From positions 202,641 to 266,640 of IMG/VR virus record IMGVR_UViG_3300005253_001115: DNA of 64,000 nt. One strand, 5' to 3'. The translations under genes were made by a program, and so were the position numbers. Below are positions 27,179 through 61,153 of this stretch, piece after piece (within the stretch, counting starts at the first letter, position 1; the number at the start of each line of letters is the position of its first letter). The notes under the pieces are model-generated. The model did no database searches. It was not told where the DNA came from and saw nothing but the letters and a program-made list of their open reading frames with translations.

Positions 27179-29057
27179 TGGAGGGCCTTATTCTCTTACG
27201 GTCCCAGAACTCATCACGCCAGTCCTTGCAAATTTCGTAGAACTTCTTCAACTCTTTCTCTGAAAAGCTTCCGTAGTGTGTGGTCTTGTCCTTATCAATC
27301 CTCTCGAACAACACCTCACCGTATTTCTTCAAGAACTCAGCAAGCTCTTTGTAGCAGGCCACACGGATCTTCTTGGCACCGAACAAATTCAAGAGCTTGA
27401 GCTTGAAATGGTCGGCAGCATGCTGCATGTGCTCCTCTGGGGTGTTGTATTGCACCAAGAGCTTCTCGATAAACAGGACTATATGCTCCATGTCCGTCAG
27501 ACCCTCGGGCTTCGGGGCACATCTATACTCTTCCAGAACAGCCCCCAGAAGCCTCTGGTACACCTCATGACCGTACATATCCTCGATTGTAGTGGCGTCG
27601 GGATCGCTCTCGCCCCGAGCTGACTTAGTTTTCATCGAAGGCAGCATACAAGGGTACGCCAAATTATCAACAATCAGGAAGAACAGCAGAATACGAGTAC
27701 GGTGCCCCAGAAGCTCCGCTCGGCTAGAGCAGCCTTTAGGGATTACGAACTTGGGAATGTAAGCCACGTACTTGACTGTAGTCTTTCCGTGAAACGATCG
27801 GAACATTCGACCCATCGTCTGGATGTTGTTCGTAATGGACTTCTTGGGAGCCGACTCGTGAATACGGTCGCAAATGACCCAATCTGTACCCTCACGCACG
27901 ATGTCGCAAGCAACCACGATGTCGAAAGCGTGCGCGTCCCCTCGCTGGAGAGCTTCGTTGTCCTCCAGCAAAAGGTGCTTGTTAAAGTCTCGTTCGGATG
28001 CTGACAACCCTTCTCTGATTACCAGATCACAAATTCGCCCAGGCTTTAGAGCCTTGAGCCCTTTGATTAGCTTTCGCAGTAGCTTTTCTCCCTTGGCACC
28101 CTTCCTCCACGCTTCTCCCGTTCGCGGACAAGGCAGCAGGTGATATCTGTTAGGCTCCTGTGCTACAGCGTCAAGCATCATCTGCACAGGGTCTCTATTG
28201 TACTCCGTGTATTCCATCTTGAATGATCGAATACCCAAAGTCTTCCAGTTGTCCAGCCATTTGTGTTCGTACACCGTGAACTGTACGTCGTCCGGGAAGA
28301 TCTTCTGGCAATCCCCACGAAACGGAGTAGCAGTGCTGTAGCAGACCTTGTACGACTTGCACCGGCTAGCGAACAAAAACCGATAGAATCGCCCCAGACC
28401 GTTAATGTCTGATTCGTCAGAAGAGGCAATGTGGTGCATTTCGTCGGGGCGGAATGTGGTGTTCTTGGGGATGCTATTGAGGCGCGCTCTTGCGGCCTTT
28501 CGCTCAGCCGCGCTCCCTTCCAGGGTCCGTGCCACCAATCTGTCGAACACAGCAACCAGTAGCGCATTTGAACATACTGCCACGAGCCCCCTGAAGCTGT
28601 CAGGGTCCTTACATGCTCCACGCTTTGCGGCGGACGTAAGGCACATCCAGTGCTCCAGAGCGTCCATCTTGGACTCTAAAGAGGAAAAGTCTCGCGTGAA
28701 GTTCTCGCTGTCGCTCACCATGTATTTGTATACTGGACCATCAACATCAAATTGGAAGTCTTGCTTCTTGACGAAGCCGAAGCCAATGTGCAGTTGGGGG
28801 ACTGGGATCAACTGGGCTTGGGTGAAGTTACTATCCACCATGTCTAGAATTGACATGAAGATCTGAAATGTGGTCTTACCACATCCGCAGGGTGCAATTA
28901 TCCCACACAAGCGGCAGCCATGCAGAGCTTCAACGCCCATTCGCTGCCATTCGCGAGGCCAACGCTTCTTCATGTATTCGGAGAAAGAGGGGAGTGGAGG
29001 CTTGTGCAGTTTCCAGTCCGGGTTGTCCAGAGCAACTGTAGCGAGATTCTTTGGCAT
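27171..29057 (-). CDS. Superfamily 2 (Res-like) helicase/ATPase
   Basis: APCGCGKT, DEMHH, STATP, EGTD, QTMGR. Confidence 0.8.
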   Translation of the reverse strand: MPKNLATVALDNPDWKLHKPPLPSFSEYMKKRWPREWQRMGVEALHGCRLCGIIAPCGCGKTTFQIFMSILDMVDSNFTQAQLIPVPQLHIGFGFVKKQDFQFDVDGPVYKYMVSDSENFTRDFSSLESKMDALEHWMCLTSAAKRGACKDPDSFRGLVAVCSNALLVAVFDRLVARTLEGSAAERKAARARLNSIPKNTTFRPDEMHHIASSDESDINGLGRFYRFLFASRCKSYKVCYSTATPFRGDCQKIFPDDVQFTVYEHKWLDNWKTLGIRSFKMEYTEYNRDPVQMMLDAVAQEPNRYHLLPCPRTGEAWRKGAKGEKLLRKLIKGLKALKPGRICDLVIREGLSASERDFNKHLLLEDNEALQRGDAHAFDIVVACDIVREGTDWVICDRIHESAPKKSITNNIQTMGRMFRSFHGKTTVKYVAYIPKFVIPKGCSSRAELLGHRTRILLFFLIVDNLAYPCMLPSMKTKSARGESDPDATTIEDMYGHEVYQRLLGAVLEEYRCAPKPEGLTDMEHIVLFIEKLLVQYNTPEEHMQHAADHFKLKLLNLFGAKKIRVACYKELAEFLKKYGEVLFERIDKDKTTHYGSFSEKELKKFYEICKDWRDEFWDRKRIRPSNA

Positions 29058-29067
29058 GTCAGGTATA

Positions 29068-29092
29068 TCGACCCCGAGCTGAGAATCTTGAG
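29068..29092 (-). promoter_or_regulatory. Sigma28-like phage promoter (CTCAAG-N15-TCGA, 10 nt before ATG)
   Basis: One of 13 copies of CT(C/A)A(A/T)G-N15/16-(C/T)CGA upstream of minus-strand starts. Confidence 0.65.
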
Positions 29093-29130
29093 CTAAATCT
29101 TAGACAAGTGGCTGCTGAGACGAAAGAAAC

Positions 29131-29151
29131 GGCCCCGGGAGACCGGGGGCC
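29131..29151 (-). terminator. GC-rich hairpin downstream of 29165-30190
   Basis: ggccccgg...ccgggggcc, followed by GUUUCUUU on the minus strand. Confidence 0.55.
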
Positions 29152-29164
29152 ACGGGCGCGTCGC

Positions 29165-30945: not shown

Positions 30946-30958
30946 ACTCCTCTTTAGT

Positions 30959-31678
30959 CTACCACTCTACAAGAGTGCCGAGGGATGTTTTTGCTTCTTC
31001 AAGAATCTTCTCCGCTTCCTCCAAAGAAGTAAAAGTGCCAAGAGAAAGGACAACCCGGTACTGGTCTTCGAGCCCAGCCACCCGTTTTTTTCCTTTGTGG
31101 CTAAGGGGTTTTGTGGTAGCTTTTTGCCTGTAAATCCCCGGAGGTAAATCTCTGTTAAGGGTTGTGCGCCTGTTGAGTGTTTGTTGCCTATGTGTTGCCC
31201 ACCGCAAATTACCGGGTTCATAGTTTCCGTCGTTGTTAATTCGATCAAGAGAGTGCTCTTCGGGGCGTGGTCCCAGGTTTTCCTCCAGCCACCGTATAAA
31301 CGCGCCTGCGTCGTCTATCCACGGCTCATACATCTTAATGCCACGAGCACTGTAGTAGGCATGATACTTGCGACTTTTTCCACCACATCTTTCTTTAATG
31401 GAACACCACAGAGAGTACATAGGATTCTTTCCTCCTACTGGACTATATCCGTGCTTCTGTCTGTGCATATTTGCGCCGCAACTTTTGGTTACACCACTCA
31501 CACAATTGCCCAAATATACAATTTTCTCGACACCGCATTCACATATAGTGGCGACCTGACGACCGTTCTTTATTGTGGGAAACACCTCGTGTAGTACGGT
31601 CAGGGTTCCATAGACATTCCCCACCACATCCTTAGGCAAGGAACTACGTCGGCGCTTCCAGTTTTCTCCTCGGGGCAT
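30959..31678 (-). CDS. HNH homing-endonuclease-like protein
   Basis: KSCG, Y..RGI, SLDRINNDGNYEPGNLRWAT. Confidence 0.8.
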   Translation of the reverse strand: MPRGENWKRRRSSLPKDVVGNVYGTLTVLHEVFPTIKNGRQVATICECGVEKIVYLGNCVSGVTKSCGANMHRQKHGYSPVGGKNPMYSLWCSIKERCGGKSRKYHAYYSARGIKMYEPWIDDAGAFIRWLEENLGPRPEEHSLDRINNDGNYEPGNLRWATHRQQTLNRRTTLNRDLPPGIYRQKATTKPLSHKGKKRVAGLEDQYRVVLSLGTFTSLEEAEKILEEAKTSLGTLVEW

Positions 31679-32972: not shown

Positions 32973-32998
32973 TCGGTCTCTGCGGCTCAGAACTTTAG
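32973..32998 (-). promoter_or_regulatory. Sigma28-like promoter (CTAAAG-N16-CCGA-N10-ATG)
   Basis: Repeated motif. Confidence 0.65.
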
Positions 32999-33075: not shown

Positions 33076-33327
33076 CTACGAAGGGTTTGTGTATCTCTCC
33101 ACGAGGAGAGGCGCGGCATCAAGGATCGACATGATATCCTTCTTGCCAACCCCCGTTGCGTCGTGCAACAGTAGCACAATCGCTCGTCTTTTCAAGCCAG
33201 ATTCGTTGATCTGGTCGAAGCCGTCTGCCACTTTGTGGAGGCTGGAGACTATGATGCTGAGCGGCTCCTCAGTATCGTTATCGACCGTAACATGGGAGTT
33301 CTTGAGTTCTTTCTTAGGTCTGGGCAT
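33076..33327 (-). CDS. Hypothetical protein
   Basis: ORF tiles in the operon. Confidence 0.55.
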   Translation of the reverse strand: MPRPKKELKNSHVTVDNDTEEPLSIIVSSLHKVADGFDQINESGLKRRAIVLLLHDATGVGKKDIMSILDAAPLLVERYTNPS

Positions 33328-35317: not shown

Positions 35318-35845
35318 ATGATAGTGAAATCACTCAAAGAAATGATGGAATTAGGACATACTGTACAACTCGATGATGCCGAAGAGGAGATATATGCGGC
35401 ACTCGCTGGCTCTGGTCACCTTGATTCGCACATGTTGACACTTGCCGGACCGCTCGACGGGAAGCCTCGGCCACCTGAATGGTTTCGGGAGGAATTCCAC
35501 ACTATGTGTGCCGCTTACTTGCGCATGTACGACGAAAACCCTCAATGGCACATGGTGATAAATCGAGGCTGGTCCGGCACTGGTCAATGGAGTGCGCACG
35601 TAACTTGGGTGAACGAGAAGCCCCGGAAATTGAAATTCTTCACTTGGTGGTGGAATAAGCGTTTCGGCACGATGCGTTGTGTGCTATCTGTACACTCGAA
35701 TGGTCTCCGGTATATCGTAAAGAACATGGTGCAACCCGACGCCCGGACCTACGAAGGAGCACGAAATCGCCGAAATACCAAAAAAAGAGGTAAAGGTTTC
35801 CGTGGGGTTACCGATAAAGAGACCGATGCCGAAATCGAAGGATGA
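35318..35845 (+). CDS. Hypothetical protein
   Basis: 175-aa ORF with SD AAGGA. Confidence 0.55.
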   Translation: MIVKSLKEMMELGHTVQLDDAEEEIYAALAGSGHLDSHMLTLAGPLDGKPRPPEWFREEFHTMCAAYLRMYDENPQWHMVINRGWSGTGQWSAHVTWVNEKPRKLKFFTWWWNKRFGTMRCVLSVHSNGLRYIVKNMVQPDARTYEGARNRRNTKKRGKGFRGVTDKETDAEIEG

Positions 35846-38938: not shown

Positions 38939-39475
38939 CTAGTTGCCCCTTTCTTTCATCTTTTTGGCCCACTTCTTCTGCCACTCGGACTGCGGAGTGT
39001 CGTTCAGAATATCCTCGACCGAAGCCGTAGCCCTGTGTGGCCCAGAGGCTCTTGTTTGCGATCTACGGGCTTTTCTCCTTCTAGGCGATGGCGGAGTGGC
39101 CTTAGCGAAGAGGTGGTCCCTCTGCTCGTCATAGTAACCGTCAGGGCCAGATTTGTAATACTTCAGGGTTGGATCGTTGGTTCCCCAGTTCGGCGGGGGC
39201 GGCTTCCTTCTGGCTTCCTTCCGCTTCTTCTCCCTATGGTGGTAAGAGGTCCCCGTGGGGGGTTTTGACCTTATCACCGGCTCTCGGTACGGACACTTCC
39301 CTGCCTTGGTGGGGTTGGTGATTGCTCGGTAGGCCCAATTGACCAATTGGAACTCCATATCTGGTAGATCCGGGTTCAGGTCAGGATGGGTTTCCCTGGA
39401 GAGCTTCCGGTAAGCGTTCTTGATCCGCTTCCTAGTGGAACCTCTTTCAATTTCGAGCACCTTGTACGGGTCCAT
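38939..39475 (-). CDS. DnaJ (J-domain) protein
   Basis: DPYKVL...IKNAYRKL...HPDLN. Confidence 0.85.
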   Translation of the reverse strand: MDPYKVLEIERGSTRKRIKNAYRKLSRETHPDLNPDLPDMEFQLVNWAYRAITNPTKAGKCPYREPVIRSKPPTGTSYHHREKKRKEARRKPPPPNWGTNDPTLKYYKSGPDGYYDEQRDHLFAKATPPSPRRRKARRSQTRASGPHRATASVEDILNDTPQSEWQKKWAKKMKERGN

Positions 39476-39633: not shown

Positions 39634-40038
39634 TCATTTTCTCTCCTCTGCCGCGAAATGCTGCTGAACATCCGACAGAAGCTCGTCCAGCTTCCCCTCA
39701 AGGATGTCCTTGTAGCGATAGGTCTTCCCGGAACGGTGGTCCTTCACACGCTGATCGGACTCGTGATAAGTCCTTACACGTTCTGTACTTGTAGCCTCTA
39801 CTTGCGTTTTAGCGGCCTCTTTCATCAGAGGCACGAGGATATTCGTCATGCGCTTGAAGGCAGCCTTCTTGTTCTTTCCCTGCTCCTTATGCTCCTCGGC
39901 TTTAGCTGTAATCCCAGTTTCTACATGTGTTAATCGAACAGCCGTATCCCTTTTATTTCGATTTTGACCACCTTTGCCGCTAGCGCGGTAGTAGTCGATT
40001 CTGATGTCTTCTTTACGAACTGTCTGTGGCCACGCCAT
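39634..40038 (-). CDS. GGQ peptidyl-tRNA hydrolase domain protein (truncated class I release factor-like)
   Basis: RASGKGGQNRNKRDTAVRLTH...RTYH...RVKDHR; start reassigned to 40038. Confidence 0.88.
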   Translation of the reverse strand: MAWPQTVRKEDIRIDYYRASGKGGQNRNKRDTAVRLTHVETGITAKAEEHKEQGKNKKAAFKRMTNILVPLMKEAAKTQVEATSTERVRTYHESDQRVKDHRSGKTYRYKDILEGKLDELLSDVQQHFAAEERK

Positions 40039-40096
40039 TTTGTTTCTCACATGCTTATGTTTAGGAGGGAGTATTACTAAAGAAAGGATCATCTTT

Positions 40097-40900
40097 ATGT
40101 TACTATCATTGCCTTTTGAAGAGATAATTGCACGGTACCAGAAAGGAGAATCCCAAGCACAACTTGCTAATAGCTTTAGTGTAGACCGGCGAACTATTAG
40201 GAGAAGGCTGGTTAAAGCTGATATACCTCTTAGGTCTGGTGGAGAGGCTTCCAAGGTCCAAAAAAACAAAGCCTTTACTGCATCCACTGTGGTAAACGAA
40301 TTGGTCGATGGAATGTTATTAGGTGATGCTTGGATAGAGCAAGGACAAGACAACGCTCGCCTTGGTATTGAAGTGACCAAAAAATCCGAAGGGTGGATAG
40401 AACAGATATCTGATATCCTCACAGCGCACGAGGTCAAGCATTCCATAGGGTATAGAAAACCCAGAGAAAAAATAATAAACGGCATTCATACCCGATCAAA
40501 GGAAAGCGTTATGCTTAGGACCAGTCTATATCCTAATTTTGCTGTCCAAAGACTACGGTGGTATCCAGAAGGTACAAAAATAGTGCCCAGAGATTTAGAA
40601 CTTACTGCAAGTAGTATAGCTCATTGGTATTGGGGTGACGGATCAACCAGCAAGTATATGGTCCGTCTATACACGAACAATTTCTTAGAAAAAGACTGTG
40701 AATTCCTAGTAAGCTGTCTGTTGGAGTTCGGAGTAAGTTTTTCAATAAGCAAAAGTCGCAAAAATCCTGTTCTTAGTCTGTACAACAATTCTGAAAGAGA
40801 AAGGTTTCTGGACCTAGTTCGGGACCACGTTCCAGAATGTTTCGAATACAAAGTACAAAAACCTGTAATAGTGAGAAGAAGCAAGCCTACTCTTTTTTGA
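40097..40900 (+). CDS. LAGLIDADG homing endonuclease with N-terminal HTH
   Basis: GMLLGDAWI and IAHWYWGDGS; SD AAAGGA before ATG 40097. Confidence 0.8.
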   Translation: MLLSLPFEEIIARYQKGESQAQLANSFSVDRRTIRRRLVKADIPLRSGGEASKVQKNKAFTASTVVNELVDGMLLGDAWIEQGQDNARLGIEVTKKSEGWIEQISDILTAHEVKHSIGYRKPREKIINGIHTRSKESVMLRTSLYPNFAVQRLRWYPEGTKIVPRDLELTASSIAHWYWGDGSTSKYMVRLYTNNFLEKDCEFLVSCLLEFGVSFSISKSRKNPVLSLYNNSERERFLDLVRDHVPECFEYKVQKPVIVRRSKPTLF

Positions 40901-40906
40901 AAATTC

Positions 40907-41340
40907 CTGCGCCGTAGACACCATAGTACCGGATTACACTGTCATGTTGGTCTACGGCGCAGAACGAGGCACGGCATTCTCCTTTTGGATTACACTGCTA
41001 TGTAGGACGTTCCTCTTTGAAAATTCCTGCGCCGCAGACATCATAATGTCGGGTTACATCACCGAGTCGGTCTGCGGCGCAAGTTAAAATGTAGTAGACA
41101 CGGCAAGACCACTCGGGCTACAACTTCAACACGGCCGTGTCTACTGTGTTAGAAAAGGAGGCGCGACATTCTCCTTTTGGGTTACACTGCTATGTGGGCC
41201 GTGCCTCTTTGAAAATTCCTGCGCTGCATGGCACGGCTCTGGGGGGTTACAACATCGCTAAGGCCACACAGCGCAGGTTAAAATGTAGTAGACACGGCAT
41301 ATCCCAAACGGGTTACAACATTCTGCTGGCCGTGTCTACT
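40907..41340 (-). repeat. TIGR-like stem-loop guide array, block 1 (7 units)
   Basis: Units at 40907-40962, 40966-41015, 41028-41081, 41093-41145, 41158-41207, 41218-41277 and 41287-41340. Each is a 9-14 bp stem enclosing CCN-N9-TGTAA(C/T)CCN-N9-TG. Confidence 0.88.
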
Positions 41341-41349
41341 TTCGTTAGA

Positions 41350-42174
41350 TCAATCCGATACCTTCCGCCACTGCTTCCACAGTTCCCGCAGGATGCGCTT
41401 CGACAGGAGCCTACGCTGGTGTAGGAAGATGTGGCCCGTTGTCCAGTCAGGGTGTGCAGCAGCAGCTTTGGCCTTCACTCCCTCAGAATATTGGTAGAAT
41501 TCATTGTTGGTCTTCTTGCCGTTCTGGTGAACAGTACCCTGCACAACGAACATCATGGATCTCCTGCTCGGGTTGTAACCGTGCAGTTTAGCCATTTCAG
41601 TGCCACGTCGAAGGCGCTGGCGAACCATGGGATCTTGCGCATTCTCGGACACCATACCTAGCCCAAAACGCTTCCACAATTTAGCGGGCGTGGCGAAATT
41701 ACGCAAGTCGGCTCCGGCTTCTGCCAATATCCTTCCTACAGCTAGGAGGCTCAGGCCGGGGGTTCCTTTACCGGGGCGACCAACCCACGAAGCGATCGGC
41801 ATACCTGCCACTATGGCAGTGATGTCTTTGTGGTATTGCCTTATTTGGGGGTCGAAGCCCCTGATAGCAGGGACCATAGCGAGCGCCATAATCTCCACTT
41901 TCGCAGCAAATACCTCTATTGGGTCGGTGGAGGTCCGATCAATCTCGTCAGGCTTCACATGCAACATCCACTTTTTGTGGACGGCAGTTGCCAGCGCTCC
42001 GTCTTTTGTGCAGAGAGCGTACTTCTTAACGAAGCACGTCTTACCTTTGCAGTGGTGGTCCTGCACAGCACGCTTGATGACGCCATGTAACTGCTGGTTG
42101 AGGGACTCTCTTGCTCTCTCAAGATTCAGACAATCTCTATGGAGGCCGAGGAGTTTAGTGATTTCGTTGTGCAT
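41350..42174 (-). CDS. Nop-domain / IS110 C-terminal-like RNA-binding protein without nuclease domain (TasA-like)
   Basis: Helical N-terminus, then PGLSLLAVGRILAEAG.DLRNFATPAKLWKRFGL...GYNP...H...RR...KRILRELW; no RuvC/DEDD or HNH domain; flanked on both sides by dual-spacer arrays. Confidence 0.82.
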   Translation of the reverse strand: MHNEITKLLGLHRDCLNLERARESLNQQLHGVIKRAVQDHHCKGKTCFVKKYALCTKDGALATAVHKKWMLHVKPDEIDRTSTDPIEVFAAKVEIMALAMVPAIRGFDPQIRQYHKDITAIVAGMPIASWVGRPGKGTPGLSLLAVGRILAEAGADLRNFATPAKLWKRFGLGMVSENAQDPMVRQRLRRGTEMAKLHGYNPSRRSMMFVVQGTVHQNGKKTNNEFYQYSEGVKAKAAAAHPDWTTGHIFLHQRRLLSKRILRELWKQWRKVSD

Positions 42175-44414: not shown

Positions 44415-44603
44415 TTAGGTGACAGGTGTAGTTTCCTCTTCGGCAGCCAGCCTCATAGCTTTAGCCTTTTTTTGAGCTTCTATGGCTTGCCTTCGACCGG
44501 ACTTTTTTAGCTCTGCTGGATAAGCATGGCCATAACAGATGATACGGTTGGGAATTGCCTCTGCCTTGCACCCCTTGACTTCGCAGGTTTTCCAAATTGC
44601 CAT
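44415..44603 (-). CDS. Small Cys/His protein with RRQAIEAQK motif
   Basis: CEVKGC...CYGH; SD GGAG. Confidence 0.55.
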   Translation of the reverse strand: MAIWKTCEVKGCKAEAIPNRIICYGHAYPAELKKSGRRQAIEAQKKAKAMRLAAEEETTPVT

Positions 44604-44790
44604 GTCGCTTCTCCAGCGGGTAGATGCCTATTCCATGTCTCCTTCAACTTCAACCAGCTTTCGGTCTGTGTACTTGCCTCGAACTTTATTTACCTTGTCG
44701 GTCGCTTCGGCGATTTCTCTAGCCTCTTCGTCAGACAGGTCGTGATCCAGCACGAGCCTCTTCGCGGAGAACACAATTCTTTCGAATAGG

Positions 44791-45618: not shown

Positions 45619-45643
45619 TCGGTCACCTAGCGCAGAACATTAG
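45619..45643 (-). promoter_or_regulatory. Sigma28-like promoter (CTAATG-N15-CCGA-N10-ATG)
   Basis: Repeated motif. Confidence 0.55.
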
Positions 45644-46898: not shown

Positions 46899-47924
46899 TC
46901 CTCGCTCCTTCATTTGTTGTACCATATGACGTGGGTGAATTCACCCCGGTTTTTTCCTTGCTTGAAGTCCGATGGGAGGAACTCGATACTGGTTTTGTGG
47001 GTGGCGGTTGCATAGTACGCAATACCGTCACTATCGATGATGGCCCCGCTCTCCAGTATAGAGGAAAACTCCTCTTTAGTAAAGTGATCCCCAAAGTCAG
47101 GCAGAGGGCTGAGGGTGAAGTTGTCGTCACTCATTCGTCAATCTCCATTTTCGTGATGGTGTAATAGATGCCTAGGGGACTACCTTCACAATAGATCTCG
47201 CACCACAACTCAGTTTCCCCCTCGTCTCGGGGCTCGTGGACACAGAATGTGTACCCCGGTTCGCTCCAGCTTTCTTTGGAGTCAGCTACCGCTGCTAAAA
47301 CTGCCCTGAAGAAGTCAGAGTAGACTCCCGTGTAGCTGGCATCGTTGCAGTCCTCAAAGAACTGTCTTACGACATAGACTTCGGGCATACTTCATCCTCT
47401 TCGTGGTCGCAGTCCGAGTGCTCACATTCGTACTCGTGGTCCACGTCGTAGTCGGTGTCGATGTGGGTATCGCAGTTGTGGCAGTAGATTACACTCATCC
47501 TTTATCCTTTCGCTGGAGGTAGGCGTGCTCGTCGAATGGTACATCACTCAGCACCCTATCGTCAATGGCAACAATCGTTCCAGTCTTCATGTCAATGTGG
47601 AATTTCACCTCGTAGAGTGCGCCCACGAGACGCCTCCACAGCACCTCAAAGCGGGGATCATCGTCGTCGATGTTGAAACCGTACAGCTTGTCCGCTGCGC
47701 TCTCTTTGGAGCCGTGCAGGCAGGTTGTAATGATGAGCGGGAATTCTTCCATGTTGTCTTCGATTTGCTCATCAATTGCCGCCTTGGCTTCCTCTTTGGA
47801 GGCGGCATAACCCCAACGGTTGTCGCCTGCCCCGTCGAAGTCCTCGTGAGCAAAACCCCAGTCCATGGCGCGGCACGGTATAGGCTTCGCCCAATAGTAG
47901 ATCCGGTAGCCCCTGTATTCGGTT

Positions 47925-48570: not shown

Positions 48571-48595
48571 TCGGTCAGGGGCAGGAGAACTTGAG
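48571..48595 (-). promoter_or_regulatory. Sigma28-like promoter (CTCAAG-N15-CCGA-N10-ATG)
   Basis: Repeated motif. Confidence 0.7.
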
Positions 48596-48610
48596 AGTTA
48601 TCTCTCCAAT

Positions 48611-49946: not shown

Positions 49947-50317
49947 AGTTTCCTCTTCGTCTCGCCGCAGAAGACCCCGATAGGAAATTTATTCCTACCG
50001 GGGTCTATTACAATTGTACTATAGTTTCTCGTTATTTTAGATCGCCTGTCGCGATCTCTCACCCCCTACGTTTGGGGTCGGCTGTCCGGCCGTTAAATAG
50101 AAGCCGGGAGCACTTGTACTTTAGTCTACTAGGACCAAGTTGGCAACCTCCGCATTGCACCTATCGACCTTGAGCTTCTTCTCAGGGTCGTCCTGGGGAC
50201 GACTCAAGCAGGCCATGATGCTCCCGACCACTGGAAACGTGTGGGTAATCTCCCACTCGTGCTCCACGTCTTGCGACCTTCCCCCAGGAATAGTGTAGAG
50301 TACCTTGTCCCCTACCT

Positions 50318-51001
50318 TTAACTTCGGGCTAGATTTTTTTCGACCCATGCGGGTTGCTCCGGGATGCGCTTGAGAATCTTCGCGGGGTATTGCACGGGGA
50401 GCGCTTCTCGCCGCTCTATTCGCTTGGCAATATGAGCCGGACCCCAATTGTAAGCCGCTAGGGCAGCGTGCTCATTACCAAAGCGATCAAGAAGCTCACG
50501 GAGATATGCGCAACCCATGCGCACATTAGTAGCAGGATCGTTCAAAGACGCCGAGGTGTAGTTCGCGATTTCTAGGCGCGCAGCGATCTCGGCTCCGGTC
50601 CTGGGCATGATCTGAGTCAGCCCGATGGCTCCTACGAGGGAGACGGCATTTGGGTTCCCAGCGCTCTCTACGCGAATGAGGGAGGCAATCAACCAGGGCG
50701 AGAGATCAAACTCACTGGAGGCATCCTCGATGGCCTGAGCGACGATCTCAGCAAGTTCTCGGTCCTTGATCCCGGTCTCGGCGGCAATAGCGTCCACGAA
50801 AAGGTTCCACATCTCTGCATCGCGCTTGGCGATGTACTTCTGGTGGCGGGCGCGGGTTTCGATCTGGTCGATGACGTGCTGAGGCACAACAGGCTGCTCG
50901 TTGATATCCCCGGGGGATACGACGCCCATGAGTACCAGCATGAAAATTCCAGTAAGGATCATGAGTCGTTGCATATGGCTGCGTTCCATCTGATTCTCCA
51001 T
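50318..51001 (-). CDS. Lytic transglycosylase (SLT domain) with N-terminal hydrophobic segment
   Basis: IRVES.GNPNAVS..GAIGLTQIMP, AAYNWG. Confidence 0.9.
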   Translation of the reverse strand: MENQMERSHMQRLMILTGIFMLVLMGVVSPGDINEQPVVPQHVIDQIETRARHQKYIAKRDAEMWNLFVDAIAAETGIKDRELAEIVAQAIEDASSEFDLSPWLIASLIRVESAGNPNAVSLVGAIGLTQIMPRTGAEIAARLEIANYTSASLNDPATNVRMGCAYLRELLDRFGNEHAALAAYNWGPAHIAKRIERREALPVQYPAKILKRIPEQPAWVEKNLARS

Positions 51002-51136
51002 ACCAAGAAATAATGGTGCTTTTATCCGAAAATGAAGTGTTTGAACACCGGGAGGAATACGACTCCAAAAATCACCACGAAGGCAAAGCAATAGAGAATG
51101 AATAGATCGAAGGCTGTTTTAAGCATGCCTTTTATA

Positions 51137-51161
51137 TCGGCCAACCCCTCCAGAACTTTAG
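51137..51161 (-). promoter_or_regulatory. Sigma28-like promoter (CTAAAG-N15-CCGATA, 10 nt from CCGA to ATG 51126)
   Basis: Repeated motif. Confidence 0.7.
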
Positions 51162-51510: not shown

Positions 51511-52014
51511 TTACTTTTCGGTAGTTCCGTTTGCAACTTTAGCACTTTCTGCAACTTTATCAGCGGATTTCTCAGCAGTCTTTTCGAGTAGTTTCTTGGC
51601 GAGCTTCTCGGCCACACGGTCCACAGTCTCAGCAGCCTCTTCCACGAGGGCCTCGGCTATCTCTTCGGCCTCGGCTTCCTTCTCAGCCTCTTCCTTGACC
51701 GCAGTCGGTCCTACGGGTCCGGTAGATGCAGTGGAGCCTCCGGCTTCGATGATCTTACGCTCGAACACTGCATCCATAGGATCAGCGTCAGGCTCCTGGG
51801 TCCATATCCAATCAATTTTTGTTTTGCCGCCATGTCCGTGGATATTCTCTACGTTTTTTATTCCGGCATACACATTAGTGCTGCCGTTCGCACCCAGCCA
51901 TCTTACTATAGATGTCCCATCACTGGCTTCGAAAACGTCGGCAAGATGGTCTCCTGTACCGGAGACACCGTGTACATCTTCGTTGCGCATAATTTTCCCT
52001 ACGCGAACCGACAT
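51511..52014 (-). CDS. Phage hypothetical protein (D..GVSGTG...DG...RW) with charged tail
   Basis: ATG overlaps the HNH stop. Confidence 0.6.
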   Translation of the reverse strand: MSVRVGKIMRNEDVHGVSGTGDHLADVFEASDGTSIVRWLGANGSTNVYAGIKNVENIHGHGGKTKIDWIWTQEPDADPMDAVFERKIIEAGGSTASTGPVGPTAVKEEAEKEAEAEEIAEALVEEAAETVDRVAEKLAKKLLEKTAEKSADKVAESAKVANGTTEK

Positions 52015-52640: not shown

Positions 52641-52877
52641 CTAGCTTTCTCCGTGACTAATTTCGGGCATCGAATAGCTCTGCTCCTAGAGACTTTAGTC
52701 TAATCCGAGTCCGACCCCGAATAGATAGTATCCTTCGCCTGTGGTGCTCTTCAGGGATGCGCTCGTGGGCTACATCGACGTAACACCATGGCTTTATTGC
52801 GATGGCGCCCAATGAGCAAAACTGGCCGAACTCCTTGGGAGCCAAAGGCGAATACCCGTGCCCTTCGATCTCTTCGT

Positions 52878-54163: not shown

Positions 54164-54188
54164 TCGGCTCCTGTGACGGATTCTTTAG
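54164..54188 (-). promoter_or_regulatory. Sigma28-like promoter (CTAAAG-N15-CCGA-N10-ATG)
   Basis: Repeated motif. Confidence 0.7.
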
Positions 54189-54268: not shown

Positions 54269-54691
54269 CTATTTCGAGAACTGTGCGCGCCAATACTTGT
54301 TCATCAAGCCACGGCGCACACGGCTGTTACAGTGCTCATCAGAGTGAGTCTCATGGAGGTTCAGGTCGGCCCCATGAACCTCACGCATGAACGAACCTAC
54401 CGCAACTGACCGGCTTACGCCAGCGCTACAGTGGATCATGAAGTCACTCTCGATGTAGCTCTCGATGAACTCATGCAGGATCTCAGCATGTTCGATCGAG
54501 AACGCAATGATGTTGTGCCCTGTCATGCCTGTGGGGATCTTCACAACGTCATCGAACTCGATGCGCAGAATGTCGTCCCAACCCTCTTTCAACTCGTAGC
54601 TTTCCCCGGGGCTACCGATGGAAATCACCACTGTCCTGGGACGTGGCTCGATCTCGGCCGCATGGTACTTGCTGTAAACGTCCACCCTCAT
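54269..54691 (-). CDS. Cys-dependent (PTP/dual-specificity-like) phosphatase
   Basis: IHCSAGVSRS (CX5R). Confidence 0.85.
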   Translation of the reverse strand: MRVDVYSKYHAAEIEPRPRTVVISIGSPGESYELKEGWDDILRIEFDDVVKIPTGMTGHNIIAFSIEHAEILHEFIESYIESDFMIHCSAGVSRSVAVGSFMREVHGADLNLHETHSDEHCNSRVRRGLMNKYWRAQFSK

Positions 54692-55143
54692 TGTACTTCC
54701 TTCGACAAAGCCTCTGTAATCATTTCCCGGAGCTTGTCCATTACGGATGGAGTATTAGCGGTAGAGTGGACCAGTTCAGCACGTCCTCCGTTCTCTTCGA
54801 TCACCTTGCAGAACGACTCACACGCAGACTCAAGTTTACCTGCCGTTTCGATGAATCCGTGCGGAGCCTCCTCGACCAGTTCCTTGGAATCCTTGAGGCC
54901 CAGCCCCGTGAAAGCGCGCACTTCCTTGATGCACTGAATCTTCCTCTCACCGAAGGATATGAAGGTGATGCCTGCCGGTCGCCCCTCAGTCAGTGCCGGT
55001 AGCTTCGCGCGCAGAAAGTCGTTCACGTCAAGCTCGACGCTAAGACGATCGGCCCTCAGTACCTCGGGGCCGATGGTACATTCCAGTCCCTCGACTTCCA
55101 GCTTGAGGATGTTGTCTTTGAAGCTCAATTTCGATGCAGGCAT
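54688..55143 (-). CDS. Protein containing a ribosomal protein bL12 C-terminal domain
   Basis: KIQCIKEVRAFTGLGLKDSKELVEEAP. Confidence 0.8.
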   Translation of the reverse strand: MPASKLSFKDNILKLEVEGLECTIGPEVLRADRLSVELDVNDFLRAKLPALTEGRPAGITFISFGERKIQCIKEVRAFTGLGLKDSKELVEEAPHGFIETAGKLESACESFCKVIEENGGRAELVHSTANTPSVMDKLREMITEALSKEVQ

Positions 55144-55153
55144 GGTTTACTCT

Positions 55154-55178
55154 TCGGCCTCCCGACCGAAAACTTTAG
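55154..55178 (-). promoter_or_regulatory. Sigma28-like promoter (CTAAAG-N15-CCGA-N10-ATG)
   Basis: Repeated motif. Confidence 0.7.
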
Positions 55179-55298: not shown

Positions 55299-55805
55299 TT
55301 AACGTGCCCTCTCATGTGCCAGAAGCGCCTTTGTAACCTTCGCCATGGCCGGAATGTACCGCTCCAGAGCTAATCGAATGTGATGCTCCGTCCGTCCCGG
55401 CTTCGGTGCAGCGTTCCGCTGAATGTCGGCCAGTTTGACGACGGTGGTGTCCCGATCGAGAATCGCCCGATCGAGAAACTCGTTGTAGGTTTCTTTGCCG
55501 AAGTAGTGCCGGGTCAACCCCGTCAGAATCTCATGGACCCGAACGAGGTCATGCTTCTCAAGGAACAGGGAGATCCGGCTCTCACTCTGTGGGTGGTCCT
55601 CCATCGCGTCGTGGAGAATCGCGGCAACCTGAACTTCGATCGACTCGTCCTGCTCCTGTACCGTCTTGAGAACCTGAAGTAGGTGGAAGATGTAGGGACC
55701 ACCACCGTAAAGGTCATCCTTGTGGATGTCGGCGGCGAGTGCGATTGCCTTTCCTAGTACCTTGTCCGTCGTAAAGCGCTTTACTAAAGCTAGTACCTTC
55801 GTCAT
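55299..55805 (-). CDS. HD-domain hydrolase, SpoT/Mesh1 (small alarmone hydrolase)-like
   Basis: A..H...PYIFH, AAILHDAMED, LT, VKLAD. Confidence 0.8.
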   Translation of the reverse strand: MTKVLALVKRFTTDKVLGKAIALAADIHKDDLYGGGPYIFHLLQVLKTVQEQDESIEVQVAAILHDAMEDHPQSESRISLFLEKHDLVRVHEILTGLTRHYFGKETYNEFLDRAILDRDTTVVKLADIQRNAAPKPGRTEHHIRLALERYIPAMAKVTKALLAHERAR

Positions 55806-55829
55806 GGTGTGTTCCCTTCACCCTATCTA

Positions 55830-55854
55830 TCGGTCCTCACCCGTGGAACTTGAG
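55830..55854 (-). promoter_or_regulatory. Sigma28-like promoter (CTCAAG-N15-CCGATA)
   Basis: Repeated motif. Confidence 0.65.
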
Positions 55855-56090
55855 GCTTTTCCCTATGGAAGCGAATGCTGCCTTTGTTTCACACTGGTTG
55901 CTACAAAAATCTCGTGTGGTTTCATGGCCGCAGAAGTTGCACTTCCCCTGCTTGCTCTTGTACTCCTGTTCGACGTAACGCTCAGCGTTCACGCGGTCGT
56001 CCATACGGCGCTGGATTTCCAGCGGGGCAGGAACAAGTTTGGCTATCATCCAGTTAACCTCTTCTTTATCTAGTCCCATGTTCTCTACCT

Positions 56091-56116
56091 TCGGTCCGAG
56101 CCTTGATTGCCTTGAG
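56091..56116 (-). promoter_or_regulatory. Sigma28-like promoter (CTCAAG-N16-CCGA-N11-ATG)
   Basis: Repeated motif, inside the upstream CDS. Confidence 0.5.
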
Positions 56117-57009
56117 GTTTTTCTCGTACCCTGGCGAATTGTAGTCGTTCGCCGAAAAGCCTACTACAAAATTGCTGAACTCCTGCTCTAGCAGTTCCCA
56201 CACGCTGCGGTAGGTGGTGTGGAAAGTTGGCTCCCAGTCTCGGTAGTCAGCGCTCTGGCGTCTCTGGGGCTCCCAGTCTCGGTAAACCGGGTCGTTGACA
56301 AACTGAACCTGATTTGTGGCCTGCTCATGACGCTCGGTCATTTCGCGAGGATCGTCCAGTACGTGCCCACCCGGAGTACAAAACCCGTAACATCCCATGG
56401 CATTGGAAAACCGCAGGTTGTGCGCATCGCAGAATGGTTGCAGTACATTCTTCTCGAAATACTGCACATGGCTATCGAAAGCCTTCTCCATGCGATCAGC
56501 GATTCTCTCGCTGTGCTTCTGCACCTTCCCAATGCCCTCTTCTAGACTCACGGGGTGACTTTCGGGAGCTTCCACTCCATGCGGTCGCCGTAGGCGTTCT
56601 TGATGAGCGTCTGCTCGCTGATAGCCGCCGCCAAAGCCTTGCGGGCATTCCGGGCAGTGGCACCGAACCCACACGCACCTCGCAGCATGGCACCTTCCTT
56701 CACCTCGCACCTACGCAGGCTGGCGACCTTCTGGTTCGTTGCAGTCTCGGTGACTTTTACCTTGCTGTCGGTCATGTACTCGACTTCTTTCAATCTCATG
56801 CGTATGCCTTTCCTATTTAGCGGTTCCGATGTACCAGCCGGGCCAGCTTTGACCGTGACTGCTCGATCTCTTCGTCACTCATTGGAGTCTGGACGAACCG
56901 GCGTTCGGTCTCATTGAACCCAGGGAAATCGCCGTGCTCTTCGAGACCTTTGTGGAAGGGATCGGTCGCGATGTTGTCCTTGACTTTTTCGTCTTCCATA
57001 CTTTATTCT

Positions 57010-57034
57010 TCGGTCGTTTCTCCAGAAACTTGAG
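57010..57034 (-). promoter_or_regulatory. Sigma28-like promoter (CTCAAG-N15-CCGA-N10-ATG)
   Basis: Repeated motif. Confidence 0.7.
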
Positions 57035-57363: not shown

Positions 57364-57801
57364 TCACCAGACCTCTACGAGAGCATCGGAGGGCATCTTC
57401 GGCACTGCGATCCGAGCGTCTTCGGCAAGGTCATCTGCCACGGCGCTCGACTCGATCATGTTGAGAATGATGTCCCTGACCGAAAGCTCGAACACGCGAG
57501 ATACTGCGTCCCCGAGAATGTCGTAGTCACCACGATGCACCTCGTCGGTACTCTCGGGATCATCGAACGTAGCATGGAAGGGCACGACCGTGAACACCTG
57601 CCACTTCGGACCGCGAACCTCGCGCCCGCCCATACCAAAGCGCAGCGTGCCGTCTGTTTCGATCAGCAGGTTGATGCCCAGACCGGGCAGGTTGACCAGA
57701 AACTCGGTGTCGGACTTCTGCTCGACCTCGATGGTGCTCGTCATGCCCAGCGTCTTGATGCCTGCTTCGAGGAACTTGATTGTCTGCTTTACGCTTTCCA
57801 T
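57364..57801 (-). CDS. Hypothetical protein
   Basis: Promoter motif and SD upstream. Confidence 0.6.
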   Translation of the reverse strand: MESVKQTIKFLEAGIKTLGMTSTIEVEQKSDTEFLVNLPGLGINLLIETDGTLRFGMGGREVRGPKWQVFTVVPFHATFDDPESTDEVHRGDYDILGDAVSRVFELSVRDIILNMIESSAVADDLAEDARIAVPKMPSDALVEVW

Positions 57802-57827: not shown

Positions 57828-57852
57828 TCGGACACTTGGTCAGGATCTTGAG
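57828..57852 (-). promoter_or_regulatory. Sigma28-like promoter (CTCAAG-N15-CCGATA)
   Basis: Repeated motif. Confidence 0.65.
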
Positions 57853-58830: not shown

Positions 58831-58840
58831 ACTTTATGTA

Positions 58841-58865
58841 TCGGCGGCACCCTGGGAAACTTGAG
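58841..58865 (-). promoter_or_regulatory. Sigma28-like promoter (CTCAAG-N15-CCGATAC, i.e. GCCGATA; 10 nt from CCGA to ATG)
   Basis: Repeated motif; closest match to the FliA -10 consensus. Confidence 0.72.
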
Positions 58866-59671: not shown

Positions 59672-60033
59672 TTTCTATCCTTTCCGCCGATTACGCCCAG
59701 TCCGGCGTTCGTACCCGTAACCCCGAAGGGCACTGTAGAACAGATTTTCCTTCTCGGCTTCATTCATTTGAATGAACCTCGACTCACGAATCTCTTCCGT
59801 AAACCCAACTACCTCTTCGGCAGCGGGTTCCAAAACCTGAGTGTTATCCTCGCTCATGTTGGCCACCTGCTCGCCCTTCTGAGGTCGTGAATCACTTCCT
59901 CGGTCGTCCTTTCGGTCCAGAGCCTTCTGCCAGCGCTCCATGAAGTAAGTCAAGCGCTCGCGGATAATTTCGGGGTCTCCCGAGAATACCGCAGCATCGA
60001 TAGTCTGTAGTGCCTCTTCGTCTGAGGGGTGAA

Positions 60034-60492
60034 TCATGCTTTCCTCCGCTTCTCGTAGATGGCTCGAACCTTATCCGATGCCTGTAGCTCGCCCGTGAAG
60101 AGGGCAAAACCACAGTCGCACTCGCGTAGGCCGATGCCCCCCGCTGGGAAGATGTTGCACGCATCCTCGTGGCGACCGTAGCGGAGCATAGCACTTGCGT
60201 AGTCATTGCCGGATAGCTCCAGAAGTCGCTCGACCTCTTCGGCCTCGATGCCTTCGTGGGCGAGCCGGATAGCCTCTAGCGCGAGGCTGAGGTGATACTC
60301 TCGCTCACTGTCCTCGAACATGCCGTCGCCCACGGTGGTGGCAGAGTAAACTGTCTCGCCACCACAGCCGGGGTAGTCGGCCCTAAAACCGCCATGCCGC
60401 AGCCTGAGGTAGCCCACCTGCTCGTCGTTCTCATCGAGAACGTCGTACTGCTCGGGGCAGGCACCGCATGTCTGTACGAGTCTGAAGCTCAT
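60034..60492 (-). CDS. Phage hypothetical protein (TCGACPEQY...YLRLRHG)
   Basis: ORF tiles in the operon. Confidence 0.6.
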   Translation of the reverse strand: MSFRLVQTCGACPEQYDVLDENDEQVGYLRLRHGGFRADYPGCGGETVYSATTVGDGMFEDSEREYHLSLALEAIRLAHEGIEAEEVERLLELSGNDYASAMLRYGRHEDACNIFPAGGIGLRECDCGFALFTGELQASDKVRAIYEKRRKA

Positions 60493-60551
60493 TACTGCCC
60501 CTCTTCGGCTCGGTCCAAGTCCTGTTGGGTATACTTTATCGGTCTCTCCCT

Positions 60552-61097
60552 TTATCCGCTTCTAATGACCAGTTCGATAGCCATTCCGTCGATGCGGATC
60601 CGGCGTTGCGGCAAAGTGCCGGAATTCTCAAAAAATCCGTCGCTTACGATTCGAATCCGGGTAAAACCCTTCTCTTTCGCATGGACGAGAACAGACTCAA
60701 GCTTGGTGCCGCCTCCCGCTTCCGCTGGCCTCTGTTCACTGACAAACGTAGTGAACCAAAAAGTTTGTCCGATGTTCTCGGAGGCCACGAGAGCGTCCAG
60801 ATCGTGTCCGTGCATCGACCCACTACAATCAAAGTAGGTTGCTTCTACAGCCGTGCCAGCAGCCCACTCGCCTGTAGCCCACTCGTCCACGGTGCCTTTG
60901 ACGCTGAACCTGATCGTATCAGGGTCCACGATCTTGACGGCTTCGATCACTAGACCGCCCATCTCGTCCACTCCGACTTTCTTCTCGAAGAGCGCTCGAA
61001 GCTCATCCTGCCCCCCGAAAAGCTCCGCGAGTGTCATATCAACAGTTGTGTCAATCGCCTTTCCCTGGCTCTCTGCCGAGGGTTCGTTGTCAAACAT
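60552..61097 (-). CDS. Hypothetical protein with vWA-like MIDAS motifs
   Basis: DCSGSM, GGGT, IVSDG. Confidence 0.5.
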   Translation of the reverse strand: MFDNEPSAESQGKAIDTTVDMTLAELFGGQDELRALFEKKVGVDEMGGLVIEAVKIVDPDTIRFSVKGTVDEWATGEWAAGTAVEATYFDCSGSMHGHDLDALVASENIGQTFWFTTFVSEQRPAEAGGGTKLESVLVHAKEKGFTRIRIVSDGFFENSGTLPQRRIRIDGMAIELVIRSG

Positions 61098-61127
61098 GTT
61101 TCTTCTCCTGGTTACTTTTCTTCCTCA

Positions 61128-61153
61128 TCGGACAAAACCACCCGAACCTTGAG
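61128..61153 (-). promoter_or_regulatory. Sigma28-like promoter (CTCAAG-N16-CCGAT)
   Basis: Repeated motif. Confidence 0.6.

Follow-up and report, generated by a model that had tools for sequence, protein, structure and literature searches.

A 267-kb uncultured phage from marine sediment carries about 37 predicted promoters that match the consensus of the bacterial flagellar sigma factor, sigma-28 (FliA), and a third of them are placed so that the mRNA would begin at or very near the start codon. This suggests, from sequence alone and without RNA data, a phage gene programme run through a minor host sigma factor and leaderless translation. The sites were first recognized in a 64,000-nucleotide stretch (the window) at positions 202,641 to 266,640 of the IMG/VR record IMGVR_UViG_3300005253_001115, and the search was then extended to the whole contig of 266,640 bp.

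Distribution and statistics of the sites

An earlier note listed 13 minus-strand sites of the form CT(C/A)A(A/T)G-N15/16-(C/T)CGA upstream of start codons in the window, and this observation is confirmed: all 13 are present, and at nine of them ATG lies exactly 10 nt after CCGA/TCGA, as the note had stated. At the remaining four the distance is 24, 11, 26 and 30 nt ( Table 1 ). A position-weight model (PWM) was refined on the whole contig and consists of two blocks, cTMAAGtTyT and gCCGAWAg, with 15 or 16 nt between CTMAAG and CCGA. It finds 39 sites scoring 18 or more, against 0.0 in Markov-2 shuffles, and the score distribution is bimodal. The strict pattern gives 39 matches against 4.5 expected. 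Nineteen of the 39 sites lie in the window: 12 of the 13 listed in the note, which score 22.7 to 35.7, and seven that it missed. The site upstream of 56079 is weak and scores near noise. One of the seven additional sites, at 8073-8076, has CTGC in place of CCGA and is doubtful.

The frequency of the motif in coding sequence had been named beforehand as a point that could overturn the observation, and the motif is not equally frequent there. Of the 39 sites, 25 lie in the 15% of the genome left non-coding by our rough gene calls, an enrichment of about 4-fold, and all 39 are co-oriented with the local genes. Contrary to the note, the set is not limited to accessory genes. It is found at the head of blocks of small accessory genes at both ends of the contig, in the tRNA region among the tRNA arrays, in front of a helicase-like gene, and at the head of a divergent block of nucleotide-metabolism genes (DNA ligase, ATPase-like and NMN-adenylyltransferase/Nudix).

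Table 1. Sigma-28-type sites in the window and the sigma gene of the phage. Coordinates are those of the window and run from the −35 element to CCGA/TCGA, except where noted; distances to ATG are counted from CCGA/TCGA. Sites marked "added" were absent from the earlier note.
Position	Strand	PWM score	Feature and context
8073-8076 (CCGA position only)			Added; CTGC in place of CCGA, doubtful
29068..29092	-	22.7	CTCAAG to TCGA; ATG at 29057 (10 nt) of a 628-aa helicase-like gene; weak helicase matches (PHROG helicase family E 1e-10; Pfam Helicase_C below its cut-off)
32973..32998	-	30.4	Spacer 16; ATG at 32962 (10 nt) of a 125-aa gene
33281..33306	-	24.5	Added; CCGA at 33281-33284; no start codon close by
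35790..35814	+	23.3	Added; GTAAAG ... CCGA, CCGA at 35811-35814; ATG 11 nt after CCGA opens a 94-aa ORF
44440..44464	-	30.8	Added; CCGA at 44440-44443; 34-nt leader carrying AAGGAG before a 59-aa ORF
44698..44722	-	25.2	Added; CTAGAG ... CCGA, CCGA at 44698-44701
45619..45643	-	35.7	ATG at 45608 (10 nt) of a 198-aa kinase-like gene (Pfam AAA_33)
48571..48595	-	32.1	ATG at 48560 (10 nt) of a 211-aa methyltransferase-like gene (PHROG methyltransferase family E 9e-39)
51137..51161	-	32.2	Near-perfect E. coli consensus; ATG at 51126 (10 nt) opens only a 34-aa hydrophobic ORF, not the SLT transglycosylase gene behind it (SLT domain)
51518..51542	-	23.8	Added; CCGA at 51518-51521
54164..54188	-	28.0	ATG at 54153 (10 nt) of a 152-aa gene; a relative (L128) has a similar site with ATG 10 nt after CCGA ahead of a 152-aa ORF, a probable (inferred) ortholog
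55154..55178	-	35.5	ATG at 55143 (10 nt) of the 151-aa L7/L12-C-terminal-domain protein; conserved in three diverged relatives with no indel between −35 and ATG
55830..55854	-	26.8	24-nt leader before a 168-aa gene starting at 55805
56091..56116	-	9.7	Weak candidate, spacer 16, close to the noise level; ATG at 56079 (11 nt)
57010..57034	-	34.2	ATG at 56999 (10 nt) of a 60-aa gene; relative L128 keeps the promoter but has lost this ATG
57828..57852	-	30.3	26-nt leader (AAAGGGAG) before a 145-aa gene starting at 57801
58841..58865	-	32.5	ATG at 58830 (10 nt) of the 184-aa GGDEF diguanylate-cyclase gene (Pfam GGDEF E 2.7e-41)
59817..59841	-	25.7	Added; CTCAGG ... CCGA, CCGA at 59817-59820
61128..61153	-	32.4	Spacer 16; 30-nt leader (AGGAG) before a 181-aa gene starting at 61097
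14339..15541	-		Only sigma-70-family gene of the phage (400 aa; Pfam Sigma70_r2); −10-reading regions resemble RpoD; candidate reader of another promoter class rather than of this one; no sigma-28-type site upstream

Correspondence with the sigma-28 consensus and geometry of the start codons

The motif equals the sigma-28 consensus TAAAGTTT-N11-GCCGATAA, as quoted in PMC2859248, in both sequence and register. The −35 consensus of the 39 sites is a-a-n-G-CTAAAG-t-T-t-T, in which T, the two A's after the variable position, and G are nearly invariant. CCGA or TCGA is present in 37 of 39 sites, preceded by G and followed by W-R-A, and the importance of CGA in the −10 element is documented in PMC2859248. 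The 11 nt between the two octamers of the consensus equals 15 nt between TAAAG and CCGA, a spacing found in 31 sites, while 8 sites have 16 nt. When the core of the phage-derived model was applied to both strands of 34 kb of E. coli K-12, the known tar, motA, fliA, fliD and fliC promoters took the five best scores and aligned in the same register, and a lower hit is the otsA-internal FliA site listed in PMC4183435. The phage sites score like good E. coli FliA promoters.

In relatives with 73 to 80% protein identity, the −35 element, CCGA, GTAA and the ATG are invariant, with no indel between them, whereas the sequence upstream of the −35 element cannot be aligned. Positions after CCGA (GTAA or TAA at 4 to 7 nt) are conserved beyond the known sigma-28 octamer, both here and in other phage contigs, which a phage-specific reader could explain.

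Thirteen of the 39 sites have ATG exactly 10 nt after CCGA (binomial p about 2e-14), and none has GTG or TTG there. At these sites the −10 octamer ends 7 nt before the ATG, and the promoter itself fills the space upstream, which leaves no Shine-Dalgarno sequence between the expected start site and the codon. The mapped E. coli aer start lies 6 bp after its −10 octamer, which would be 2 nt before these ATGs. The fixed 10-nt distance to ATG puts the expected start 0 to 2 nt before the start codon. The base before the ATG is a pyrimidine in 11 of 13 sites, against 39% for other genes (p 0.002). Sites with longer leaders carry AGGAG-type Shine-Dalgarno sequences, and 46% of the genes of the phage have a strong Shine-Dalgarno sequence against 11% of control positions. 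However, some of the 10-nt sites contain GAG or GGAG at a Shine-Dalgarno-like distance, and read-through transcripts could therefore also be translated in the normal way.

Candidate readers of the promoters

The earlier note proposed that a host flagellar-type sigma factor, or a phage sigma factor of similar specificity, drives these genes from starts at or near the ATG, and this interpretation is partly supported: the promoter class and the start-codon geometry hold at the sequence level, and of the two candidate factors the phage sigma is the less likely. Regions 2.3, 2.4 and 3.0 of the phage sigma follow RpoD (YARWWVRQAI...RIP) rather than FliA (YAVQRIRGAM), and the protein is 29% identical to RpoD against 21% to FliA. 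Six-frame searches with Sigma70_r2, Sigma70_r4, FliA_WhiG and two multisubunit polymerase domains found nothing beyond this one sigma, and a search for a T7-type polymerase, which had no positive control, also found none. Sigma-70-type promoters are not enriched between 44 and 64 kb of the window (13 found against 10.4 expected). Phage contigs that share almost no proteins with this one, at 41 to 62% G+C, carry the same promoter type although their sigma genes differ: RpoD-like in one (G003), ECF-type in another (G001), and none in a complete 35-kb genome (G002).

In our interpretation, held with no more than even confidence, these are genuine promoters of the sigma-28 (FliA/SigD/WhiG) class, 18 to 19 of them in this window, and are most likely read by host core polymerase carrying a host sigma-28-type factor. 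Transcription at 13 sites would begin at the A of the ATG or up to 2 nt before it, yielding mRNAs that lack a ribosome-binding site and would be translated as leaderless messages, while the remaining sites have 20- to 35-nt leaders with a normal Shine-Dalgarno sequence, or precede tRNA genes or small ORFs. The motif, its statistics, its equivalence to the FliA consensus, its conservation in relatives and the nature of the phage sigma rest directly on our analysis; which sigma acts, any dependence on sigma-28 holoenzyme, the exact start sites and leaderless state of the mRNAs, and the time in infection at which the promoters fire are inferred, as the only sequencing runs that contain the phage are DNA from marine sediment. 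The link to host motility proposed in the note, like any link to c-di-GMP, likewise remains a conjecture. The GGDEF gene does sit behind one of the strongest sites, but three cultured flagellotropic phages (Chi, 7-7-1 and phiCbK) lack such promoters, as do the nearest cultured relatives (PaBG, RSL1 and others). Dependence of roughly 37 promoters on a minor, FlgM-controlled sigma factor would also be an unusual and risky strategy. The best match of the phage PRPP synthetase (62%) is to Deltaproteobacteria and Spirochaetales MAGs, which is only a weak hint of the host.

It is possible, though less likely, that the phage's own sigma reads the promoters as a middle class switched on after its gene is expressed, as with gp36 of phiEco32 or gp28 of SPO1. 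The phage does encode one sigma-70-family protein, its region 4.2 and C-terminus are divergent and short such that its −35 specificity cannot be read off, and the absence of a sigma-28-type site upstream of its gene is expected if it belongs to an earlier class. The bases conserved after CCGA go beyond the bacterial octamer, and G003, which has 17 such sites, also carries a sigma of similar length that is 25% identical. Yet the G003 sigma is plainly RpoD-like (E 2e-81), G001 and G002 carry the motif with an ECF sigma and no sigma, respectively, and it seems unlikely that an RpoD-like protein converged on a 16-position motif and its exact spacing. The RpoD-type YA.WW.RQAI and RIP residues of the phage sigma argue against this reading but do not exclude a changed specificity.

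An undetected phage factor is more doubtful still. A sigma-28-like gene could lie in the missing ~11% of the genome, since CheckV completeness is 89% and the contig is linear without terminal repeats. A sigma could also be too diverged for the profiles, or a non-canonical phage RNA polymerase could be present, given that about 87% of phage protein families have no known function and that phiKZ-type polymerases escape standard profiles. The searches above nevertheless found no such gene, and the motif is exactly that of a cellular sigma-28 holoenzyme. Least likely is that the repeats are not promoters but binding sites for a phage regulator, recombination sites for swapping gene cassettes, or an RNA-level translation signal. 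Other sediment metagenomes do carry variants in which the DNA between neighbouring copies is deleted (55823 joined to 56088, and 56810 joined to 57006), and two further short motifs also sit at fixed distances before ATGs. However, two conserved blocks separated by a fixed-length, non-conserved spacer, strict co-orientation with genes, a position just before start codons or Shine-Dalgarno leaders, and identity with a known promoter class all fit a promoter. The flanks hold no excess of hairpins, and recombination between repeated promoters would be a by-product of their repetition rather than an alternative function.

Relation to known systems and significance

The sites share the TAAAGTTT-like −35 element, the GCCGATAA-like −10 element with invariant CGA, and the 11-nt gap with class 3 flagellar and chemotaxis promoters of E. 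coli and Salmonella, read by FliA, and with those read by SigD of Bacillus, WhiG of Streptomyces and sigma-28 of Chlamydia. They differ in lying in a lytic-type jumbo phage genome in front of accessory, nucleotide-metabolism and tRNA genes rather than flagellar genes. In addition, a C precedes TAAAG, the first A is often C, CCGA is often followed by AGAG or TAGA and then TAA instead of TAA directly, and one third abut the start codon. Many promoters of the large Thermus myovirus phiYS40 also sit directly on start codons, and its middle and late transcripts are mostly leaderless, lacking a ribosome-binding site (PMC3594737). The phiYS40 promoters are of the −10-only or extended −10 type read by the host primary sigma, in a host phylum that uses leaderless mRNAs widely, whereas here the promoter is of the sigma-28 type and the phage otherwise uses Shine-Dalgarno sequences.

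Like phages whose sigma factors have their own promoter classes (phiEco32 gp36, phage 7-11, SPO1 gp28 and gp34, T4 gp55; PMC8948821), this phage carries a sigma gene and several distinct promoter-like motif classes, which suggests a temporal programme, but the motif studied here fits a cellular alternative sigma rather than the phage's own RpoD-like sigma. Promoters dependent on FliA are carried by temperate phages next to phage flagellin and TldR loci (bioRxiv 10.1101/2025.07.22.666180). In that case a single promoter serves a flagellar moron in a prophage, while here about 37 predicted promoters would form a major transcription class of a 267-kb phage. In the promoter-early stem-loop (PeSL) cassettes of T4-type phages, many short gene cassettes each have their own repeated promoter, and population variants such as those above, lacking single cassettes between promoter copies, recall this arrangement. 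The PeSL promoters are sigma-70-like, however, and no conserved stem-loop accompanies the sites described here, as the 50 nt upstream of them fold no better than random 50-mers (mean −9.7 against −10.4 kcal/mol).

Phage early programmes are generally described as using the host housekeeping sigma factor, a phage sigma factor or a phage polymerase. Full-text literature searches returned no report of a phage whose main promoter class is of the flagellar sigma-28 type, only the single FliA-dependent promoters beside prophage flagellin loci. The motif also gives a simple genomic marker for finding more such phages in metagenomes.

A broader and more tentative proposal is that several unrelated lineages of uncultured phages, including this jumbo phage, run a major part of their gene programme (accessory, tRNA and nucleotide-metabolism genes) through the host's flagellar sigma factor instead of the housekeeping sigma, with this phage also fusing those promoters to start codons, so that the messages would be leaderless. 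Infection would then be gated by the motile state of the cell, and could proceed while sigma-70-dependent host transcription and Shine-Dalgarno-dependent translation are shut down, perhaps helped by the phage's own translation genes (an L7/L12-like protein, an RF-1-domain protein and 32 tRNAs). If a host FliA reads these sites, phage development would be coupled to motility and insulated from any shut-off of sigma-70. The inferred leaderless arrangement in a phage that otherwise uses Shine-Dalgarno sequences suggests a second layer, the selective translation of phage messages.

The phage contig and its repeated promoter-like motif

The window is the last 64 kb of a single linear viral contig of 266,640 bp, with a G+C content of 53% and a CheckV completeness estimate of 89%. 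Near-identical DNA occurs only in marine-sediment metagenome runs, and no RNA run was found to contain the phage. Alignment of DNA contigs from these runs revealed population variants (583 differences) but no transcript ends. Family scans indicate a tailed jumbo phage with a terminase, tail sheath, tail fibres, a family-B-type DNA polymerase and a helicase. A DNA search of the window against cultured phages found no match, and scans of viral contigs with the helicase-like protein and with the phage sigma factor found no close relatives. By terminase, the phage is distantly related (31-35% identity) to PaBG, NCTB, GR7B, RSL1 and Motura. Our rough gene map shows blocks of small genes at both ends, a divergent block, and large structural and replication modules in between (see table).

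The observation in the earlier note, that 13 sites of a sigma-28-like motif lie on the minus strand of the window and that at nine of them an ATG lies exactly 10 nt after CCGA or TCGA, was confirmed. Twelve of the 13 score 22.7 to 35.7 with the weight matrix described below, while the remaining site scores 9.7 and is doubtful. Seven strong sites in the window had been missed. In the whole genome the strict pattern occurs 39 times, against 4.5 expected. A two-block weight matrix refined on the genome also gives 39 sites at a score of 18 or more, against 0.0 in shuffled sequence, and hardly anything scores between 12 and 18, so the sites form a discrete class. Two sites, in which CTGC or CCGC replaces CCGA, were not counted as secure. 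The consensus is a-a-n-G-CTMAAG-t-T-y-T followed by gCCGA-W-R-A, with 15 nt between CTMAAG and CCGA in 31 sites and 16 nt in 8. Every site points the same way as the local genes, and 25 of the 39 lie in the 15% of the genome that our gene calls leave non-coding. The motif is not equally frequent in coding sequence; equal frequency there had been named beforehand as an outcome that would refute the promoter reading.

The published E. coli consensus for FliA (sigma-28) is TAAAGTTT-N11-GCCGATAA (PMC2859248), which places 15 nt between TAAAG and CCGA, exactly as in the phage. As a control, 34 kb of E. coli K-12 was scanned on both strands with the core of the phage-derived matrix. The best scores were the known FliA promoters of tar (23.3), motA, fliA, fliD and fliC (13.8 to 14.0), and a lower hit (9.2) was the otsA-internal FliA site listed in PMC4183435. 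The phage sites are therefore sigma-28-class promoters by sequence and by register. In window 44-64 kb neither sigma-70-type promoters (13 found, 10.4 expected) nor intrinsic terminators are enriched, and there this is the only detectable promoter class.

Two further repeated motifs were found. TA[GC]ACTAAAG has 19 exact copies in the genome, against about 1 expected, and in 6 of them an ATG opening a long ORF lies exactly 7 nt downstream (about 0.1 expected). It shares CTAAAG with the -35 element of the sigma-28-type sites and occurs in all genome modules, including the structural genes; it could be a promoter, a processing site or a translation signal. A third motif, TTATCTCT (often followed by A), has 22 exact copies, mostly just upstream of structural and replication genes, and in 4 copies an ATG lies 5 nt downstream. 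This is a candidate late-type, -10-only promoter, and possibly the target of the phage's RpoD-like sigma factor. One copy overlaps the start of the sigma gene on the opposite strand.

Positions of the features discussed in the text (window coordinates unless marked as genome coordinates)
Feature	Position	Strand	Detail
Block of small genes	genome 0-31 kb	+	
Divergent block	genome 187-200 kb		
Block of small genes	genome 231-264 kb	-	
Sigma-28-type sites	genome 0.4-27 kb	+	
Sigma-28-type sites	genome 187-197 kb	divergent	
Sigma-28-type sites	genome 231-264 kb	-	
Sigma-28-type site, not secure	8073-8076		CTGC in place of CCGA
Sigma-28-type site, not secure	genome 73977		CCGC
Doubtful site	56079		score 9.7
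Examples of sites with ATG 10 nt after CCGA	54153, 55143, 56999 and 58830		T-A-A at positions 5 to 7
Sigma-70-family gene	14339-15541		
TA[GC]ACTAAAG motif	17499-17508, 30952-30961, 40174-40183, 50119-50128 and 52693-52702	-	14 more copies in the genome
TTATCTCT motif	15541-15548, 22401-22408 and 48598-48605	+	most copies lie at genome 30-190 kb
TTATCTCT motif	40120-40127	-	
L7/L12-C-terminal-domain protein	54688-55143	-	151 aa, Pfam E 1e-13
34-aa ORF and SLT lytic-transglycosylase gene	51022-51126 and 50318-51091	-	
RF-1-domain ORF and LAGLIDADG homing-endonuclease ORF	39634-40900	- and +	head-on overlap; G+C 0.476 in the 40001-42000 bin
DnaJ-domain gene	38939-39475		
PRPP synthetase and NMN-adenylyltransferase/Nudix fusion	45915-46925 and genome 196,581-197,693	- and +	
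tRNA genes (32)	genome 73-24,017	+	outside the window
tRNA nucleotidyltransferase gene	genome 32,092-35,202		
Deletion variants in other marine-sediment runs	55764-56089 and 56810-57006		55823 joined to 56088; 56810 joined to 57006
60-aa gene whose ATG is lost in relative L128	56999		

Start-codon geometry and conservation in relatives

At 13 of the 39 sites an ATG lies 10 nt after CCGA. With a chance of 1/64 for an ATG at a given position, this gives p of about 2e-14, and no GTG or TTG occupies that position. Eleven of these ATGs open ORFs of 60 to 698 aa. The other two open short ORFs only, an 11-codon ORF before an ATPase-like gene and a 34-aa, very hydrophobic peptide directly followed by an SLT lytic-transglycosylase gene that has its own hydrophobic N-terminus; the latter pair may be a small lysis or cell-wall module. 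The mapped start of E. coli aer lies 6 bp after the -10 octamer, with CGA at -11 to -9 (PMC2859248). Transferred to the phage, +1 would be the ninth base after CCGA, 2 nt before the ATG, and that base is a purine in 12 of 13 sites. The base just before the ATG is a pyrimidine in 11 of 13, against 39% in other genes (p 0.002), which suits initiation at the A itself, given the preference for a pyrimidine at -1 and a purine at +1. In either case the inferred 5′ untranslated region would be 0 to 2 nt.

Sites with 22- to 34-nt leaders carry AGGAG-type Shine-Dalgarno sequences, and across the genome 46% of genes have a strong one, against 11% of control positions. So the host ribosome uses Shine-Dalgarno pairing, and the 10-nt genes form a distinct set. 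In this set of 13, positions 5 to 7 after CCGA are T-A-A (T in 8, A in 11 and A in 11), an in-frame stop codon two codons before the ATG that could be an AT-rich discriminator or a guard against translation reading in from upstream.

A scan of metagenome contigs with the L7/L12-like protein returned diverged relatives from other sediment assemblies, with protein identities of 80, 76, 73 and 43%. The three closer relatives keep a sigma-28-type site in front of the orthologous gene, with ATG 10 nt after CCGA, while the most distant one keeps the promoter but has a 25-nt leader with a Shine-Dalgarno sequence. In the alignment, CT.A.GTT, CCGA, GTAA and CATG are invariant and there is no indel between the -35 element and the ATG, whereas the spacer accumulates substitutions and the sequence upstream of the -35 cannot be aligned.

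Candidate factors reading the sites

The genome has one sigma-70-family gene and no FliA/WhiG-type match beyond it. Two weak Sigma70_r4 hits turned out to be homing endonucleases, one LAGLIDADG and one GIY-YIG. Searches also found no FlgM, AsiA, T7-type polymerase or multisubunit polymerase domains, although those for T7-type polymerase and AsiA had no valid positive control. Aligned with E. coli RpoD and FliA, the phage sigma keeps the RpoD residues of regions 2.3, 2.4 and 3.0 (YARWWVRQAI and RIP), where FliA has YAVQRIRGAM, and it is 29% identical to RpoD and 21% to FliA. It has no sigma-28-type site upstream of it.

Strict pattern scans of IMG/VR found the same promoter type, with several sites per contig, in phage contigs of 38 to 63% G+C that share almost no proteins with this phage. 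Three were examined in full, counting sites that score 15 or more. A complete contig of 109 kb has 17 such sites (shuffled mean 1.9) and a plainly RpoD-like sigma gene, a 19.9-kb fragment has 4 (0.4) and an ECF-type sigma gene, and a complete contig of 35 kb has 5 (0.4) and no sigma gene. The nearest cultured relatives by terminase show no enrichment of the motif, and neither do the flagellotropic phages Chi, 7-7-1 and phiCbK.

A promoter class shared by unrelated phages with different sigma genes or none, and identical to a bacterial consensus conserved across phyla, points to a host sigma-28-type factor. The identity of the motif with the sigma-28 class is established by sequence and register, whereas the factor that reads it and the start sites are inferred from sequence alone, and we hold the host-factor reading with only moderate confidence. 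About 11% of the genome may be missing, and positions 4 to 7 after CCGA (GTAA or TAA) are conserved beyond the known octamer. The phage's own sigma factor is a possible but less likely reader, an undetected phage factor is doubtful, and a non-promoter function is very unlikely. The idea of promoter-early stem-loop (PeSL) cassettes was dropped, since there is no excess of hairpins upstream of the sites. The best cellular matches of the phage PRPP synthetase, which with the NMN-adenylyltransferase/Nudix fusion represents nucleotide and NAD salvage, reach 62% and include Deltaproteobacteria and Spirochaetales MAGs, but they are spread over these and many other groups and are at most a weak hint to the host. 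The interpretation in the earlier note is partly supported, as the assignment to the sigma-28 class holds at the level of sequence, but the proposed link to motility and c-di-GMP remains speculation.

The promoter class itself is well known, leaderless phage messages are known from phiYS40, and single FliA-dependent promoters are known beside prophage flagellin loci. In the open-access literature searched, we found no report of a phage whose main promoter class is of the sigma-28 type; a search with the bare octamer returned only primer lists.

Genes behind the sites

Contigs from other marine-sediment runs lack single small genes, and the deletion ends lie in or next to neighbouring promoter copies. 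The relative L128 has lost the ATG of a 60-aa gene. The promoter-flanked small genes behave as dispensable cassettes. Outside the window, tRNA genes lie in arrays interspersed with sigma-28-type sites, and a tRNA nucleotidyltransferase gene is also present. Elsewhere in the window, an ORF with an RF-1 (peptide release factor/peptidyl-tRNA hydrolase) domain overlaps head-on with a LAGLIDADG homing-endonuclease ORF in a stretch of lower G+C, next to a DnaJ-domain gene.

The protein with a ribosomal L7/L12 C-terminal domain sits behind one of the strongest leaderless-type promoters and is conserved in related sediment phages. That domain binds translation GTPases, IF2 among them, and a role in favouring leaderless translation is conceivable. 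Other genes directly behind strong sites include a DNA ligase, a helicase-like protein and an ATPase-like protein (weak matches only for both), an NMN-adenylyltransferase/Nudix protein, an AAA_33 kinase-like protein, a methyltransferase-like protein and the GGDEF cyclase. These are typical early or middle functions, and the structural modules carry almost none of these sites.
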